Below are positions 48,853 through 58,656 of a DNA stretch of 64,000 bases, piece after piece (position 1 is the first letter of the stretch; the number at the start of each line of letters is the position of its first letter). The stretch is from Octopus bimaculoides. Its lineage: Eukaryota. The DNA is taken from contig NC_068984.1 of NCBI RefSeq assembly GCF_001194135.2, positions 103,879,790 through 103,943,789 on the forward strand, given 5' to 3'. Below the pieces are notes generated by a model. The model was not told the DNA's origin. It was given only the letters and a program-made list of their open reading frames with translations, and searched no databases. The position numbers were made by a program, and so were the translations under genes.

Positions 48853-49521
48853 CTAAGACTCCTTGTTTGGTATCCATAACTGGGATGATATCATTAAGTG
48901 GTCTGAAGGATAAAACTCTTCAGCCATGACACGAAAAATAGTTTGCAAAGTACCTGAGAAAATGAAGGTAATTACCGTGTAAAAAACAAGATTTGTAACG
49001 ATGCAAACTAAAAGAAAAGGCAACGGTGCTTTTATAAATGGAAAAAACCTGTAGAGTATCCGTAACCTTGAATATGCTCTTGTGTTGAAATATAATTTTA
49101 CACTGTAGAGACAGTGAAATGTTCTTACCGATATTCGACTAAAGAGAAATAATATGAGGGCCAGTACAGTACCTGATGTTAATAAACAAGCAAACAGAGT
49201 CAATAAAATAAAAAGTAAAAACATGAAGGAATTGCATTCTGAGCAGTCTATTAGGAGGCAATCTTTCTGATTGCCAATGTTAACGCATACTCCACAGCGG
49301 CAAGAACCATGTGGGCCACAATCCTGTGTACAACTGTAGCCAGAGACACCTTGAAAAGCTTCATATGCACTTTTAATTACTCTCTGAAATCGATGCCAAA
49401 ATATTAGTGTCTTGTATTTCTTTTTATAAAAATTACCATTGCCATGAAGATTGCATGATAAAATCTTGAAACTCTTTGAAACAAGTATTCTATCGGGACG
49501 ACTTTCATAACCAGGAGTTGG
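48853..49521 (-). CDS. EEP-superfamily membrane protein, last coding exon (PDRILV, Cys-rich module, two TM helices, PSDH)
   Basis: TTTTCAG|CCA acceptor (phase 0); ESRPDRILV ... EEFYPSDHLMISSQLW*. Confidence 0.88.
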   Translation of the reverse strand, partial: PTPGYESRPDRILVSKSFKILSCNLHGNGNFYKKKYKTLIFWHRFQRVIKSAYEAFQGVSGYSCTQDCGPHGSCRCGVCVNIGNQKDCLLIDCSECNSFMFLLFILLTLFACLLTSGTVLALILFLFSRISVRTFHCLYSVKLYFNTRAYSRLRILYRFFPFIKAPLPFLLVCIVTNLVFYTVITFIFSGTLQTIFRVMAEEFYPSDHLMISSQLWIPNKES

Positions 49522-49881
49522 CTGAAAATATACAGAAACAAAATGAATTGACATTATTTTTTGTACTATCAACCTCATCTTTAGAGATTATATTTGGCCT
49601 AGAAAAACCTTTAATCTCTTAAAATGAGATTAGTAGAATAAAACATCTCGAACATCATTTAATTACTTTTGAAAAATATAATTCTTTCATGTAATATCTT
49701 TTTTTAACATCCACATTTCCATCCTTGCATAGGTCAGATGCCTTTCATGTTGCTAACTCCCACTTGATTCCAGTCAAGATCATATTTTTTTTGCCTGTGA
49801 TCAAATTTATGGAAGATAAGAGACAAACAATACTGCTTGTATAACTGACACTTGTTTACAATTATTGCCTGATGTAAAGAT

Positions 49882-50410
49882 GAGGGTGGGCCAAAATTAG
49901 TGCCACAACTTTGTGTCCCAATTCTGTTCTGTAGTTTCTTGATGCATGCTGTTATTATTTTTATATGTCATTGATTATTCAATGTGTCGAATTTTGTGAG
50001 ATAATGCTAGCAGAAGCCAGAGATTCCAGATTTTTTGATCAACTAATTTTCTCTGATGTTTCCTGTCACATCAACTGCCATAACTGCTTCTATTATTCAG
50101 AAGATGACCCTGAAGTTGTTTGGGAAAAGCACATCAATTCACCTTCTCTTGTCATTTAGGTGGCAATATTGTCTTCAAGAATTTGTGCATTCCCTATTCA
50201 AAAAGAGACGATGAATGATGATTGTTACCTGCTGCTGTGTGGAAACATCATCTGGCTGTATTTTTTGATACCGTCATTCCAAAGTCTTTGTACAAGATGG
50301 AACACCTCCTCATTATGACAAATATATAAGAAACTTCCTTGATCAGCACCTATGAAATCGTTGGATTTTCAAAAACTCAAGTTGGGGCGCTAATTTTGGC
50401 CCACCCTGTA
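49882..50410. mobile_element. Tc1/mariner deletion derivative
   Basis: TIR AGGGTGGGCCAAAATTAGTGCCACAACT / AGTTGGGGCGCTAATTTTGGCCCACCCTG-TA. Confidence 0.75.
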
Positions 50411-50599
50411 TGTATGAACATATATATATATACACACACAGCAAGCTTCTTTCAGTTTCTTTCTACCAAATCCATTCACAAGGCTTACTCAAACTGATAC
50501 TATAATAGAAGACACCTGCCATGGTGCAGCACAGTATAACTGAAGTTGAAACCACATATTTCAAAGTAAATTTCTCAACCACACTCATACCTGCAAATT

Positions 50600-50850
50600 G
50601 GTGGCGTGTAAAAAGCACCATTCAAGCATGGTCAATGCCAGTACCGCCTGACTTGCCCTCATGCTGGTGGCATGTAAAAAGCACCCACTACACTCTTGGA
50701 GTGGTTGGCGTTAAGAAGGGCATCCAGCTGTAGAAACCATGCCAGATCAGATTGGAGCCTGGTACAGCCTTCTAGCTTGCCAGTCTTCAGTCAAACCATT
50801 CAACCCATGCCAGCATGGAAAGTGGACGTTAAATAATGATGATGATGATA
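50600..50850 (+). mobile_element. RTE 3'-tail / Ceph-like repeat
   Basis: GGTTGGCGTTAAGAAGGGCATCCAGCTGTAG...GGACGTTAAATAAT(GAT)n. Confidence 0.8.
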
Positions 50851-55792: not shown

Positions 55793-55838
55793 AACACCTG
55801 ATGAAGGCTGGAGGGTATATCAGCCGAAATGATGTGTT
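55793..55838 (+). ncRNA. Minimal hammerhead motif (second family, stem III decayed)
   Basis: AACAC-CTGATGA-A-GGCTG GAGGGTATAT CAGCC-GAAAT-GAT-GTGTT; stems I and II pair perfectly. Confidence 0.65.
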
Positions 55839-56153
55839 AACAACAAGATGAGGACAAATATCCATCAAATGTAAATAATGTACATAGTTCCTCATCTCTT
55901 AAATATAGAATTGAAATAAAACAGTTGATAATGCTACTGCCAGTTTGGTTGCAACATACTGTGGCTGAATCAGCAAATATTTCCCTCATTTAGTCTCTCA
56001 CAGAATTCCATCAAATTCTAGAACAAAGATTGAATACTCCTGATGTAGAAGTTCACTCTTTGAACCTCAAATATGCAATTACATTTGACTACAGTCCTGG
56101 AAGGTGCAAAACTTAGTGGCTCGTTAATTGGCAGAAACATCATTATTTTCAGC

Positions 56154-57411
56154 TACATGAGGGTCAGCTGAAAAGTTCATAGCCTGACCAAGATACTCTC
56201 ATGGAATGTAACCAAATGTGGTATACTTTTCAACAAAGCCCTCCTTGTAACCCATACCTTTCTTCCATCAGTGTTGCAGTGCTTGGATTCCATTGCTGAA
56301 GAAGCTTTCATACTGTTGGTCAAAAAAGGCATCAATAGCAGATATTACATCATCATCACTGCGATACTGGTTCCCAGTCAAGTGTTTTTCATGTTGGGGA
56401 ACAGATGATAGTCAGATGAGACGAAATCAAGAGAATAGGGAGAGTGATCAGCCAGTCATGCACAGCAGCCATTGAAACCAAGGACTTGTGTGCTGGAGTA
56501 TTGTCCTGATGAAACAAGACCCCTTTTGTCAGTTTTCTAAGATGTTTGTTCTTTATAGCCTTTTATAACTGCCTCAACAAGTTGCAAGTTGGTATAGTAC
56601 TCTCCATTGATGGTGTGGTCCTTTTGAAGATAGTCAATAAACACAATGCCTTTTGCACCTACAGATGAAATATCATTCGCCTTCTTCAGACCAGATGAGG
56701 AGAGATGTTTCCACTGCATAGATTGTCTCTGGCTCAGTAATGAAGCCAACACTCATCCTGAGTTAGGAAACCTTCAAGGAAATCAGCTGGATCTGCCTCA
56801 AACAATGTCAGATTTTTCTGTAATGTGATCAGCCTGGTGTGCTTTTTGATCAGGAGTTATAAATGGCACCCACTAAACAGAAACCTTCATTATGCTAAGC
56901 TCATTGTGCAGAATATTCTCTGCTCTCTCAGAGGATATGCTAATAGCATTGGCATTTGATTTATAGTCAATCACCTGTCATCCATCACTATGTAGTGAAC
57001 GTGATCAATGTTTTCTTTGGTGGTGGTGGCAGTTGCAGGACGTCCAGACTTTGGGTCATCTTCAAGACTTTCCCATCCCCTTCTAAATTCAACAACCCAC
57101 TTTTGCACTGTTAATAAAGCTAGAGCATCATCCCTTAAATGTAGCAACCACGTCAGCATGAATGTTCTTGGGAACGAAACCCTTTTTATGCAGGTATTTG
57201 ATAACACCATGATGCCAAATTTTATCCATTTTCAACAGAAGTCGCTACTAGTTAGTTTTGAAGTCTTCTTGGAAGTCAGGTGTCAGTTTGCCAGGGAAGA
57301 AATATTTCGGTTATTAATAAGAATAGTTGAAATTAATGCATGTAAGATTTCACAACTCTAGCATCACTCCTTCATAATCAGCCGCATTGAGCCTTTCAGC
57401 TCACTCTCGTA
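56154..57411 (-). mobile_element. Full-length decayed mariner transposon (~1.26 kb)
   Basis: TA-flanked TIRs (GAG(G/A)GT(C/G)AGCTGAAA); KWVVEFRRG..LEDDPKSGRP, QRQSMQWKH and KGIVFIDYLQK..TINGEYY fragments. Confidence 0.88.
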
Positions 57412-58497
57412 ATTGTTAACATTCAATGATTTAGTAGAATATACCCTCGTCTGTATTTATTATAAATTACACCAAAATGAAATCTCAAAACATCAAGATG
57501 TTTGGGGATCTCATTACTAGGTGTCGTTTTAACTCGAAGCAATGCTCAGCAATCTGTTTTTGATTCCTTACAGGCTGTCTTAAGCTAAAAACAATATGAA
57601 ATATTTCAAAATACGAAATAAGGGATCATTATTCGAAAATGATATTGTCGCAAACAACACGCATAAGAAAATAATTGCATGTTTTATAAGTAAACCTAAC
57701 AGAAAATAAATCTGGGAGTATGAGCTCTGGGACAAGCAGTCTTAGAGATCTGGTCTAATTAACCCTGTTGACTTAACAAGAAACAAGATGAGTAATGTTT
57801 TTGTGTGTGGTGCGTGCGCGCGCGCGAATGACGCAGTGCCCACTCGATCCCCTTTTGAGAATATTTCTGATTCCTTTACATTTTGATTAAAAATAAAACA
57901 AATCGACTTAAAACAAACAATATATATATATATACACAAAACAATAAAGAGACTAATACATCTTCAAATTTTTCTTCAAGCGTTAATTATGCTTCCAATT
58001 GTTGTAGAGTTAAATCCCCAAAAATATCCATGATCCAGCGAAGCGAATCCGGATTTACCCATCAGATGAATTACAGTGGGGATTGCTCACCCTAAGCGAT
58101 CCCTACTTGATGTGGTTACGGAACCTGGAATATACCTGAGGGGTCTTACGGTACCCGCATGGATAATTTATCCCTATATTATATATCCCATCGTATTATA
58201 TATATATATATATATATATNNNNNNNNNNNNNNNNNNNNNNNNNNNNNNNNNNNNNNNNNNNNNNNNNTATATATTTGTTAGGAAACCCACTAATTTTCG
58301 GGGAAAAGCTGAATCGAATAGATGTATTTTATGAGAATATCTATAATAATAAAAATAATAAATTATTAAAATCACATTTAACAGGTATATTAATGTGTAA
58401 AAGTCACACAGGTTTTCATAACATCGAAGCTGTTGAAAGAAAATACTAACAGAACAAGACATTAAATGAAAATTAAGAAAGGAAATAAACTGCTCAC

Positions 58498-58656
58498 CAT
58501 TTCAATCACTCGCATTTTTCTAACTTCCCAATTGAACATTATGTTCCATAGATTATAAGTGGCAACTTTCAAACTCAAAGTGCAATGGAATATAACAGAC
58601 AGAACTAGGATTGTTAAGGAAAATCGCGACATGGCATAATGTAAATAATACACCAT
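58498..58656 (-). CDS. EEP protein, coding exon 1 (signal peptide and TYNLW motif)
   Basis: ATG at 58656 (alternative 58632); MSRFSLTILVLSVIFHCTLS|LKVATYNLWN; ATG|GTGAGC donor (phase 0); five exons total 1434 nt = 477 aa plus stop. Confidence 0.85.

Follow-up and report, generated by a model that had tools for sequence, protein, structure and literature searches.

Enzymes of the EEP superfamily (PF03372; the DNase I / APE1 / sphingomyelinase fold) share one fold and an ordered series of motifs that contribute N, E, H, D-x-N, D and finally a D-H pair. Neutral sphingomyelinases, which have no Cys knot, are Mg-dependent EEP phosphodiesterases that work at the membrane surface, and SMPD2 and Isc1 carry two C-terminal transmembrane (TM) segments after a complete catalytic domain. 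PGAP2IP/Cwh43 (PF23226) and the bacterial N-acetylglucosamine (GlcNAc)-6-phosphodiesterases are secretory-pathway or secreted phosphodiesterases that act on glycolipid or glycan phosphodiesters, the bacterial enzymes being soluble, contiguous domains. The EEP cluster with Cwh43/PGAP2IP neighbours the sphingomyelinases, and some of its members are bacterial phosphodiesterases that are secreted and cleave phosphocholine or phosphoethanolamine off GlcNAc (PMC10704324). The extreme C-terminus of human CWH43 has been treated as bearing cytosolic endoplasmic reticulum export and retrieval signals (PMC7933959), which means that at least one TM segment should lie near that end if its EEP domain is lumenal. 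Here we analysed a window of 64,000 nucleotides from Octopus bimaculoides (contig NC_068984.1, forward-strand positions 103,879,790 to 103,943,789, assembly GCF_001194135.2), in which a minus-strand gene encodes an EEP protein whose final SDH motif comes after a Cys knot and two hydrophobic segments. Judged from its sequence, the gene product is probably a metal-dependent EEP phosphoesterase that is tethered to the membrane and faces away from the cytosol (into a lumen or at the cell surface), a reading to which we assign a probability of roughly 0.7.

Gene model and the end of the EEP domain

The gene consists of five minus-strand exons with GT..AG borders throughout, which sum to 1434 nt, i.e., 477 codons and a stop. 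The spliced translation is identical (477/477) to XP_014788850.1, isoform X1 of O. bimaculoides LOC106882624, which is called "uncharacterized protein" in RefSeq, and the O. vulgaris / O. sinensis orthologue shares 99% identity with it. The original prediction, made from the DNA letters alone, had described a 477-aa spliced protein with all EEP motifs in order and with 196 codons between the Asp of PDRI and the SDH. These statements agree with our results: the protein equals the RefSeq prediction, the motifs TYNLW, FQEV, VHFS, GDFN, PDRI and SDH start at residues 33, 64, 162, 194, 264 and 461, respectively, and the codons of Asp265 and Ser461 start at bases 49494 and 48906, 196 codons apart.

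The protein belongs to the EEP superfamily. PF03372 matches residues 33-278 with 51.2 bits (cut-off 24.5), and a Pfam scan of the octopus protein found nothing but this generic EEP family above cut-off. Conservation and topology were counted over 47 full-length members of the family, all of which (47/47) score above the PF03372 gathering score. The catalytic residues N35, E66, H163, D195, N197, D265, D462 and H463 are kept in 44-47 of these members, E66 in 46. Because all residues required for EEP chemistry are present, an active metal-dependent phosphoesterase would be the default reading. The four-layer alpha/beta sandwich is further supported by an AlphaFold2 model calculated with the 47-sequence alignment (mean pLDDT 89.4, pTM 0.85), in which the EEP strands are formed. 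A Foldseek search with this model against the PDB returned EEP structures alone (3MPR, 4RUW, TDP2, CNOT6L and nocturnin) at E = 3e-12 to 1e-10 and with target TM-scores of 0.6-0.7. The single-sequence search of the PDB gave insignificant matches only.

The octopus protein departs from the superfamily in the position of its last motif. The distance from Asp265 to His463 is 198 residues, whereas the corresponding Asp-His spacing in the nearest bacterial relatives is 26 residues (A4), and a long helix, an eight-Cys knot and a TM hairpin are found in between. Exon 5 encodes, in this order, PDRI, a strand hairpin, the helix, the Cys knot, TM1, a loop, TM2 and EEFYPSDH with the last strand. The TM segments precede SDH, unlike those of SMPD2 and Isc1, and the two TM segments together with the Cys knot also set the protein apart from the contiguous bacterial GlcNAc-6-phosphodiesterases. 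With homologues at E = 1e-70 to 1e-190 that carry the parts in the same order, the insert architecture is, by this comparison, not due to chance. The Cys knot has the highest mean column conservation of all parts (0.70), with its cysteines present in 45-47 of the 47 members; a Pfam scan of these members found no family covering it. In the AlphaFold2 model the knot contains a small beta-hairpin at residues 328-335.

Several results link the C-terminal SDH to the end of the EEP domain. The PF03372 match of the intact octopus protein stops at profile position 211 of 225, ahead of SDH. Residues 284-451 were removed in silico from the octopus protein, and the aligned columns were removed from the proteins of four other species. 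This excision extended the match from profile position 208-221 to 225/225, with the octopus construct ending on His463, and raised the score by 4-6 bits in 5/5 species (51.2 to 56.4, 53.4 to 58.2, 58.3 to 62.1, 62.9 to 68.8 and 47.4 to 52.2). No such extension of the PF03372 match was obtained by truncation at residue 283. His463 is invariant, and Ser461, Asp462, Glu456 and Glu457 are kept in 46 of the 47 members; conservation over residues 456-472 is 0.66, compared with 0.52 for the EEP core.

Natural variants reach the end motif again whatever the inserted segment. The hairpin-less relatives P0071, P0171, P0175 and P0176 have the helix and the Cys piece, then a soluble linker, and then EE(F/L)(F/H)(P/A)SDH. 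P0071, a protein of 352 aa, comes from a eukaryotic metagenome contig that also carries strumpellin and poly(A) polymerase genes. In P0189, P0191 and P0199 the hairpin is tight and the Cys knot is missing, and the dictyostelid-like P0174 has about 250 low-complexity residues between TM1 and TM2. In the AlphaFold2 model, the insert helices at residues 284-311, 353-390 and 421-451 are followed by a final strand at 465-471, with pLDDT of 93 for residues 461-470 and 77 for residues 471-477. These comparisons establish, at the level of sequence, that the C-terminal SDH motif is homologous to the EEP end motif. Two comparisons do not extend to this motif. The Foldseek alignments cover about 277 columns and end before the insert, confirming the fold but leaving the last strand outside the alignment, and hhalign of the family against PGAP2IP-like bacterial EEPs aligned residues 26-201 only, short of the insert. 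The position of His463 in the active site is a proposed one, drawn from sequence evidence and not from coordinates.

Family range, nearest relatives and candidate substrates

Word-indexed homologue searches yielded 73 and then 108 proteins, and when the C-terminal module was used in an exhaustive profile search, only 114 of 1.84 billion representatives matched at E <= 0.001. About 100 proteins share the layout, and they range from slime moulds through corals to molluscs and sea urchins. The named members represent molluscs (cephalopods, gastropods, bivalves and a chiton), annelids, the brachiopod Lingula, hemichordates, all sampled echinoderm classes, cnidarians including Sanderia, and the amoebozoan Ceratiomyxa; several protist-like sequences also belong to the family. 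No vertebrate, arthropod or nematode names occur among the named members. A few protist relatives are soluble, unlike the hairpin-bearing members.

All members are labelled "uncharacterized", "hypothetical" or with generic EEP domain or family names. Literature searches by locus names gave no match, and searches on EEP "transmembrane hairpin" and ceramide aminoethylphosphonate (CAEP) phosphodiesterase returned nothing relevant except PMC10704324; no description of a hairpin-interrupted catalytic domain in the EEP superfamily was found in these searches. The suggestion that the family is undescribed holds in so far as it has no functional name and no paper was found; it does not hold for the proteins themselves, which are already in public databases. 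Among the sequences compared, which on the PGAP2IP side were bacterial or metagenomic EEPs, the octopus gene stands for a genuine and conserved variation on the layout of a familiar enzyme fold, one that is so far undescribed.

One member, P0063 (700 aa, from a Logan contig), carries, besides the Cys knot and the hairpin, a thioredoxin domain (PF00085) that interrupts the EEP domain ahead of TFSNMP; this insertion marks a second permissive site in the EEP fold.

In the homologue search (E <= 10), the out-of-family matches were bacterial or metagenomic EEPs only, and 8 of the 16 are annotated as PF23226 (PGAP2IP-like), the only specific Pfam family with any signal in the octopus protein. A profile search of the PDB ranked the uncharacterised bacterial EEPs 3TEB, 4RUW and 3G6S first, followed by sphingomyelinase C/beta-haemolysin and then by nucleases; bacterial sphingomyelinase C reached E = 3e-5 to 1e-4, its match to the family profile extending over the N-terminal two thirds. 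These matches are best read as placing the family closest to PGAP2IP, the GlcNAc-phosphodiesterases and the sphingomyelinases within the superfamily. The octopus protein is not a member of the PGAP2IP/Cwh43 family itself, because PF23226 stays below cut-off and the N-terminal Frag1/PGAP2-like multi-TM region is missing. Only a signal peptide precedes the EEP domain, and hydropathy revealed no other hydrophobic segment before residue 343.

Given the PF23226 relatives, the rank of sphingomyelinase, the cluster described in PMC10704324 and a geometry that would hold the domain close to the membrane, the probable substrate, in our view, is a phosphodiester carried by a lipid head group, a glycosylphosphatidylinositol (GPI) or a glycoconjugate. 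Several scores count against so specific an assignment. PF23226 gave 16.8 bits in the octopus protein (cut-off 27) and covered profile positions 7-156 only; it reached E <= 0.01 in just 7 of the 47 members, with 25.4 bits in the best of them. In the bacterial proteins the PF23226 profile matched only up to position 172 of 239. Furthermore, TDP2, CNOT6L and nocturnin share their Foldseek E-values with the uncharacterised bacterial EEPs; because nucleic-acid enzymes match equally well, the fold does not say "lipid or glycan", and a nuclease would fit it equally.

With the same architecture, the enzyme could instead act on nucleic acids or nucleotides, as an ecto-nuclease or phosphodiesterase anchored in the membrane (DNase I-like or TDP2-like), and not be a lipid or glycan enzyme. 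DNase I is a secreted EEP, the Foldseek matches at E ~1e-11 include TDP2, CNOT6L, nocturnin, ANGEL2 and the LINE-1 endonuclease, and exonuclease III and the LINE-1 endonuclease also appear in the PDB profile search. We consider this alternative possible, though rather unlikely: the best relatives at sequence level are the PGAP2IP-like bacterial EEPs and sphingomyelinase C, and with only about 15 residues separating the His from TM2 and with the Cys knot directly next to TM1, the domain would lie against the bilayer, a position that seems awkward for duplex DNA.

Proposed membrane topology and its implications

The original prediction listed a signal peptide, a Cys-rich module, TM1, a basic loop and TM2, and hydropathy and charge counts bear this out. 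Kyte-Doolittle windows of 19 residues peak at residues 14-32 (1.98, signal peptide), 364-382 (2.48, TM1) and 424-442 (2.41, TM2), and windows that start at residues 31-300, from the EEP core into the beginning of the helix, reach 0.96 at most. Of the 47 full-length members, 45 carry two hydrophobic segments in the region from the Cys piece to SDH, TM1 being hydrophobic in 45/47. TM1 and TM2 are without any conserved column (conservation 0.31 and 0.32, respectively). The loop of the octopus protein (residues 385-421) has 7 K/R and no D/E. Over the 45 members, the loop has on average 8.0 K/R against 1.4 D/E, while the 15-residue outer flanks have about 1.0 K/R against 1.9-2.3 D/E, and these charges form what reads as a clear positive-inside pattern. 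Ten cysteines are kept in 45-47 of the 47 members, namely Cys172 and Cys220 in the EEP core and eight in the knot. All of them are on the signal-peptide side, as expected of an oxidising compartment. His463 follows the 19-residue core of TM2 by 16-31 residues (median 23), and it is about 15 residues past the end of the helix.

We propose that, after cleavage of the signal peptide, the EEP beta-sandwich, the long helix and the disulfide-rich knot would fold on the lumenal or outer side of the membrane. The chain would then cross the membrane through TM1 (out to in), form the basic loop in the cytosol and recross through TM2 (in to out). About 15 residues past TM2, EEFYPSDH and the last beta-strand would complete the sandwich and bring the Asp-His pair to the active site. 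In this arrangement the hairpin may be seen as an anchor inserted in a permissive surface loop, which would keep the active-site face near the membrane. With that face held there, a membrane-proximal phosphodiester would be the likely substrate, for example the head group of a sphingolipid or phospholipid, a GPI, or a glycoconjugate bearing a phosphodiester. The sequence evidence strongly indicates that the chain passes through the membrane twice and that the active site is completed in cis. The central claim of the original prediction, that the last strand and the catalytic His are delivered after a two-pass membrane crossing, gains support from the conservation, the excision, the hairpin-less relatives, the charge bias and the strand in the AlphaFold2 model.

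The same SDH strand might instead complete the EEP domain of a neighbouring molecule in a domain-swapped dimer or oligomer, with the hairpin assembling the enzyme. Swapping requires a last strand that is physically set apart from the remainder of the fold, as it is here, and the modelling, which was of a monomer only, is compatible with cis and trans alike. However, both linkers are short, with 2 residues from the knot to TM1 and about 15 from TM2 to SDH, AlphaFold2 models the monomer confidently as one unit (pTM 0.85), and the hairpin-less relatives attach the same strand through a simple linker. We regard the swap as quite improbable.

Alternatively, the hydrophobic segments could stay on the lumenal side, as a hairpin of monotopic or re-entrant type or as a buried pair of helices, and the loop too would then be extracytosolic. 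This arrangement would suit those protist members whose turns comprise just 10-25 residues. The segments were, moreover, assigned by hydropathy, with hydropathy and charge counts standing in for a TM and signal-peptide predictor, a point that also weighs on the two-pass topology. Both segments have 26-30 hydrophobic residues with 19-residue Kyte-Doolittle values of 2.2-3.2, and the corresponding helices in the model extend over 38 and 31 residues. In addition to these lengths, the strong positive-inside bias (8.0 K/R vs 1.4 D/E), the low-complexity basic loop of about 250 residues in P0174 and the CC motif next to the membrane, conserved in bilaterians, all speak for a spanning pair, and we regard a non-spanning one as very unlikely.

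The loop is no mere connector, because bilaterian loops share the pattern CCLxNPxLY ... RLPP. The octopus loop retains part of it, one Cys of CCLxNPxLY. Since the catalytic strand is continuous with TM2 and with this conserved loop, the extracytosolic active site could be switched on or off from the cytosolic side, for instance by palmitoylation, by the binding of an adaptor or through membrane thickness. The invariant EE-aromatic-aromatic-P before SDH would, for its part, help to bind a cationic head group. Taken together, the enzyme might be an interfacial phosphodiesterase for head groups characteristic of the organisms in which it occurs, with a hairpin that does more than anchor, a speculative extension that we consider unlikely as a whole. 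Candidate head groups for such an enzyme are ceramide phosphoethanolamine/aminoethylphosphonate and GPI anchors; glycans and glycolipids modified with phosphocholine, phosphoethanolamine or aminoethylphosphonate are further candidates.

A two-pass membrane hairpin that interrupts a soluble catalytic domain, with the last catalytic strand arriving after it, is a rare enzyme construction. If the two-pass topology is right, folding of the active site would depend on correct membrane insertion, the active site would be pinned to the bilayer surface, and the family would point to an unrecognised lipid, GPI or glycoconjugate phosphodiesterase. The natural series of members with no hairpin, with a hairpin but no Cys knot, or with giant loops offers ready-made constructs for studies of insertion tolerance and of regulation by the hairpin. 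The importance of the family is limited by the facts that its proteins are already catalogued, that its chemistry is probably conventional and that it is absent from the main model animals.

Transcripts, feature coordinates and surrounding sequence

The predicted isoform X2 (P0002, 291 aa) is identical to X1 as far as ..NLHGN and then continues with DQRKYYFT, its terminal exon lying 3.5 kb downstream. It drops the insert and SDH together, and its product, presumably a secreted EEP fragment, would lack both the last strand and the catalytic His. The alternative forms in O. vulgaris are N-terminal truncations. Among these predicted forms there is none in which the insert is removed and SDH retained, and contig L004 (1714 nt) carries a full-length, uninterrupted, gastropod-like coding sequence of 482 aa with the insert present. 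The splicing out of the insert, named with the original prediction as an outcome that would speak against it, was not seen among the predicted isoforms, and L004 retains the insert. The C-terminal half, from P-x-PG..SRPDRI to the stop, is one exon in octopus and likewise in many other animals. That the insert is a gene-model artefact (an unspliced intron or a fusion), with the real mRNA joining PDRI directly to SDH, is hardly credible: the internal GT donor in exon 5 used by X2 is in its favour, whereas the reading frame stays open through the insert, whose protein sequence is conserved across phyla and most strongly in the Cys knot, L004 contains it without interruption, and neither X2 nor the N-truncated O. 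vulgaris forms lose it while retaining SDH.

Two groups of sequences were considered as possible variants and rejected. Thirty-odd matches of 200-250 aa without a Pfam domain (P0074-P0105) could have been stand-alone "insert" proteins. They are instead last-exon open reading frames (ORFs) on genomic contigs, because intron-derived residues and an AG-encoded Gln precede P-x-PG..SRPDRI; these ORFs are orthologous and have the same intron position at their start. The cephalopod contig L005 (protein P0003, 64% identical) has, in the stretch 1340-1402, a stop right past TM2 that follows a T-run, and the contig ends before SDH. It was not accepted as evidence of an isoform ending after TM2, since a one-base frame shift restores the family-like YIFHEAAL; the stop is probably a homopolymer error.

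The coordinates of the features are listed in Table 1. Exon 1 has 159 nt, exactly 53 codons, so that the exon 1/exon 2 junction is in phase 0. The join ..RVIEM/IETINPDVIAFQEV (..RVIEM/IETINPD..) shows zero indels in the alignment to 27 homologues, and the cephalopod contig L005 is continuous across it without interruption. Because of these two results, the assembly gap in intron 1 hides no exon, and the coding sequence and the finding are unaffected. The exon 2/3 junction is spanned by the near-invariant pair Glu113-Gly114.

Table 1. Features of the octopus EEP gene, with positions counted from the first base of the window
Feature	Position	Strand	Remarks
Exon 1	58498..58656	-	Met1-Met53; first strand KVATYNLWN with Asn35; donor GTGAGC; RefSeq-identical
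Signal peptide, residues ~1-29	58570-58656	-	Within exon 1; from hydropathy
Assembly gap, 49 N	58220..58268	.	Non-coding; intron 1, 230 nt past the exon 1 donor; adjoins a (TA)n run
Exon 2	54873..55053	-	Starts IETINPDVIAFQEV; metal-binding Glu66; ends ..GWEREG, Gly114 codon split by the intron
Exon 3	53861..54070	-	Strands with VHFSYD (His163) and QQC (Cys172)
Exon 4	51907..52121	-	GDFNTY (Asp195, Asn197), Cys220, TFSNM
Exon 5	48853..49521	-	Single open frame, 222 codons and stop
PDRI (Pro264-Ile267)	49486..49497	-	Asp265 and Arg266 invariant
Alternative GT donor after Asn283	49435..49436	-	Inside exon 5; predicted isoform X2; sequence G/GTAATT
Long alpha-helix, residues 284-311	49354..49437	-	28 residues; first part of the insert; AlphaFold2; also in hairpin-less relatives
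Eight-Cys knot, residues 319-351	49234..49332	-	C..DCGPHGSCRCGVCV..GN..C....C.EC; ends two residues before TM1
TM1, residues ~353-384	49135..49230	-	Putative; hydropathy peak and model helix
Basic loop, residues 385-420	49027..49134	-	Probably cytosolic; 7-8 K/R, 0 D/E
TM2, residues ~421-447	48946..49026	-	Putative; hydropathy peak and model helix
EEFYPSDH and last strand, residues 456-472	48871..48921	-	SDH at 48898-48906; His463 invariant
Terminal coding piece of isoform X2	45318..45343	-	AT CAG AGG AAA TAT TAC TTT ACT TGA; acceptor ..gacag

Besides the EEP gene, the window contains a ubiquitin-specific protease (USP) gene (PF00443, UCH) with two long open exons on the plus strand, at 22881-24083 (the Cys-box part) and 42074-42970 (the His-box part). 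The USP and EEP genes are convergent, and the former extends over about 20 kb that are rich in repeats and gaps. IS1595/ISXO2-like DDE transposase ORFs (PF12762, 57.6 bits) lie on the minus strand at 34615-35380, within the large intron of the USP gene. ARAGORN found no tRNA-like elements between positions 45000 and 60000 of the window.

Intron 1 of the EEP gene holds a decayed mariner-type transposase on the minus strand at about 56150-57260 (PF01359, 24.9 bits, cut-off 24). It has many stops and frame shifts, and the readable pieces include ..FHQDNTPAHK.. and ..DYLQKDHTINGEYY... The same intron contains an inverted repeat with arms of about 140 nt (55502-55643 and 55744-55881) that are 85-98% complementary and are separated by a 100-nt spacer with an (ATT)n-like run; the structure resembles a short dispersed repeat present in two copies placed head to head, or a miniature inverted-repeat transposable element. 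Short dispersed repeats are also common to introns 3 and 4, at 50445-50486 and 52755-52796 (42 nt, 93% complementary) and additionally at 53150-53520.

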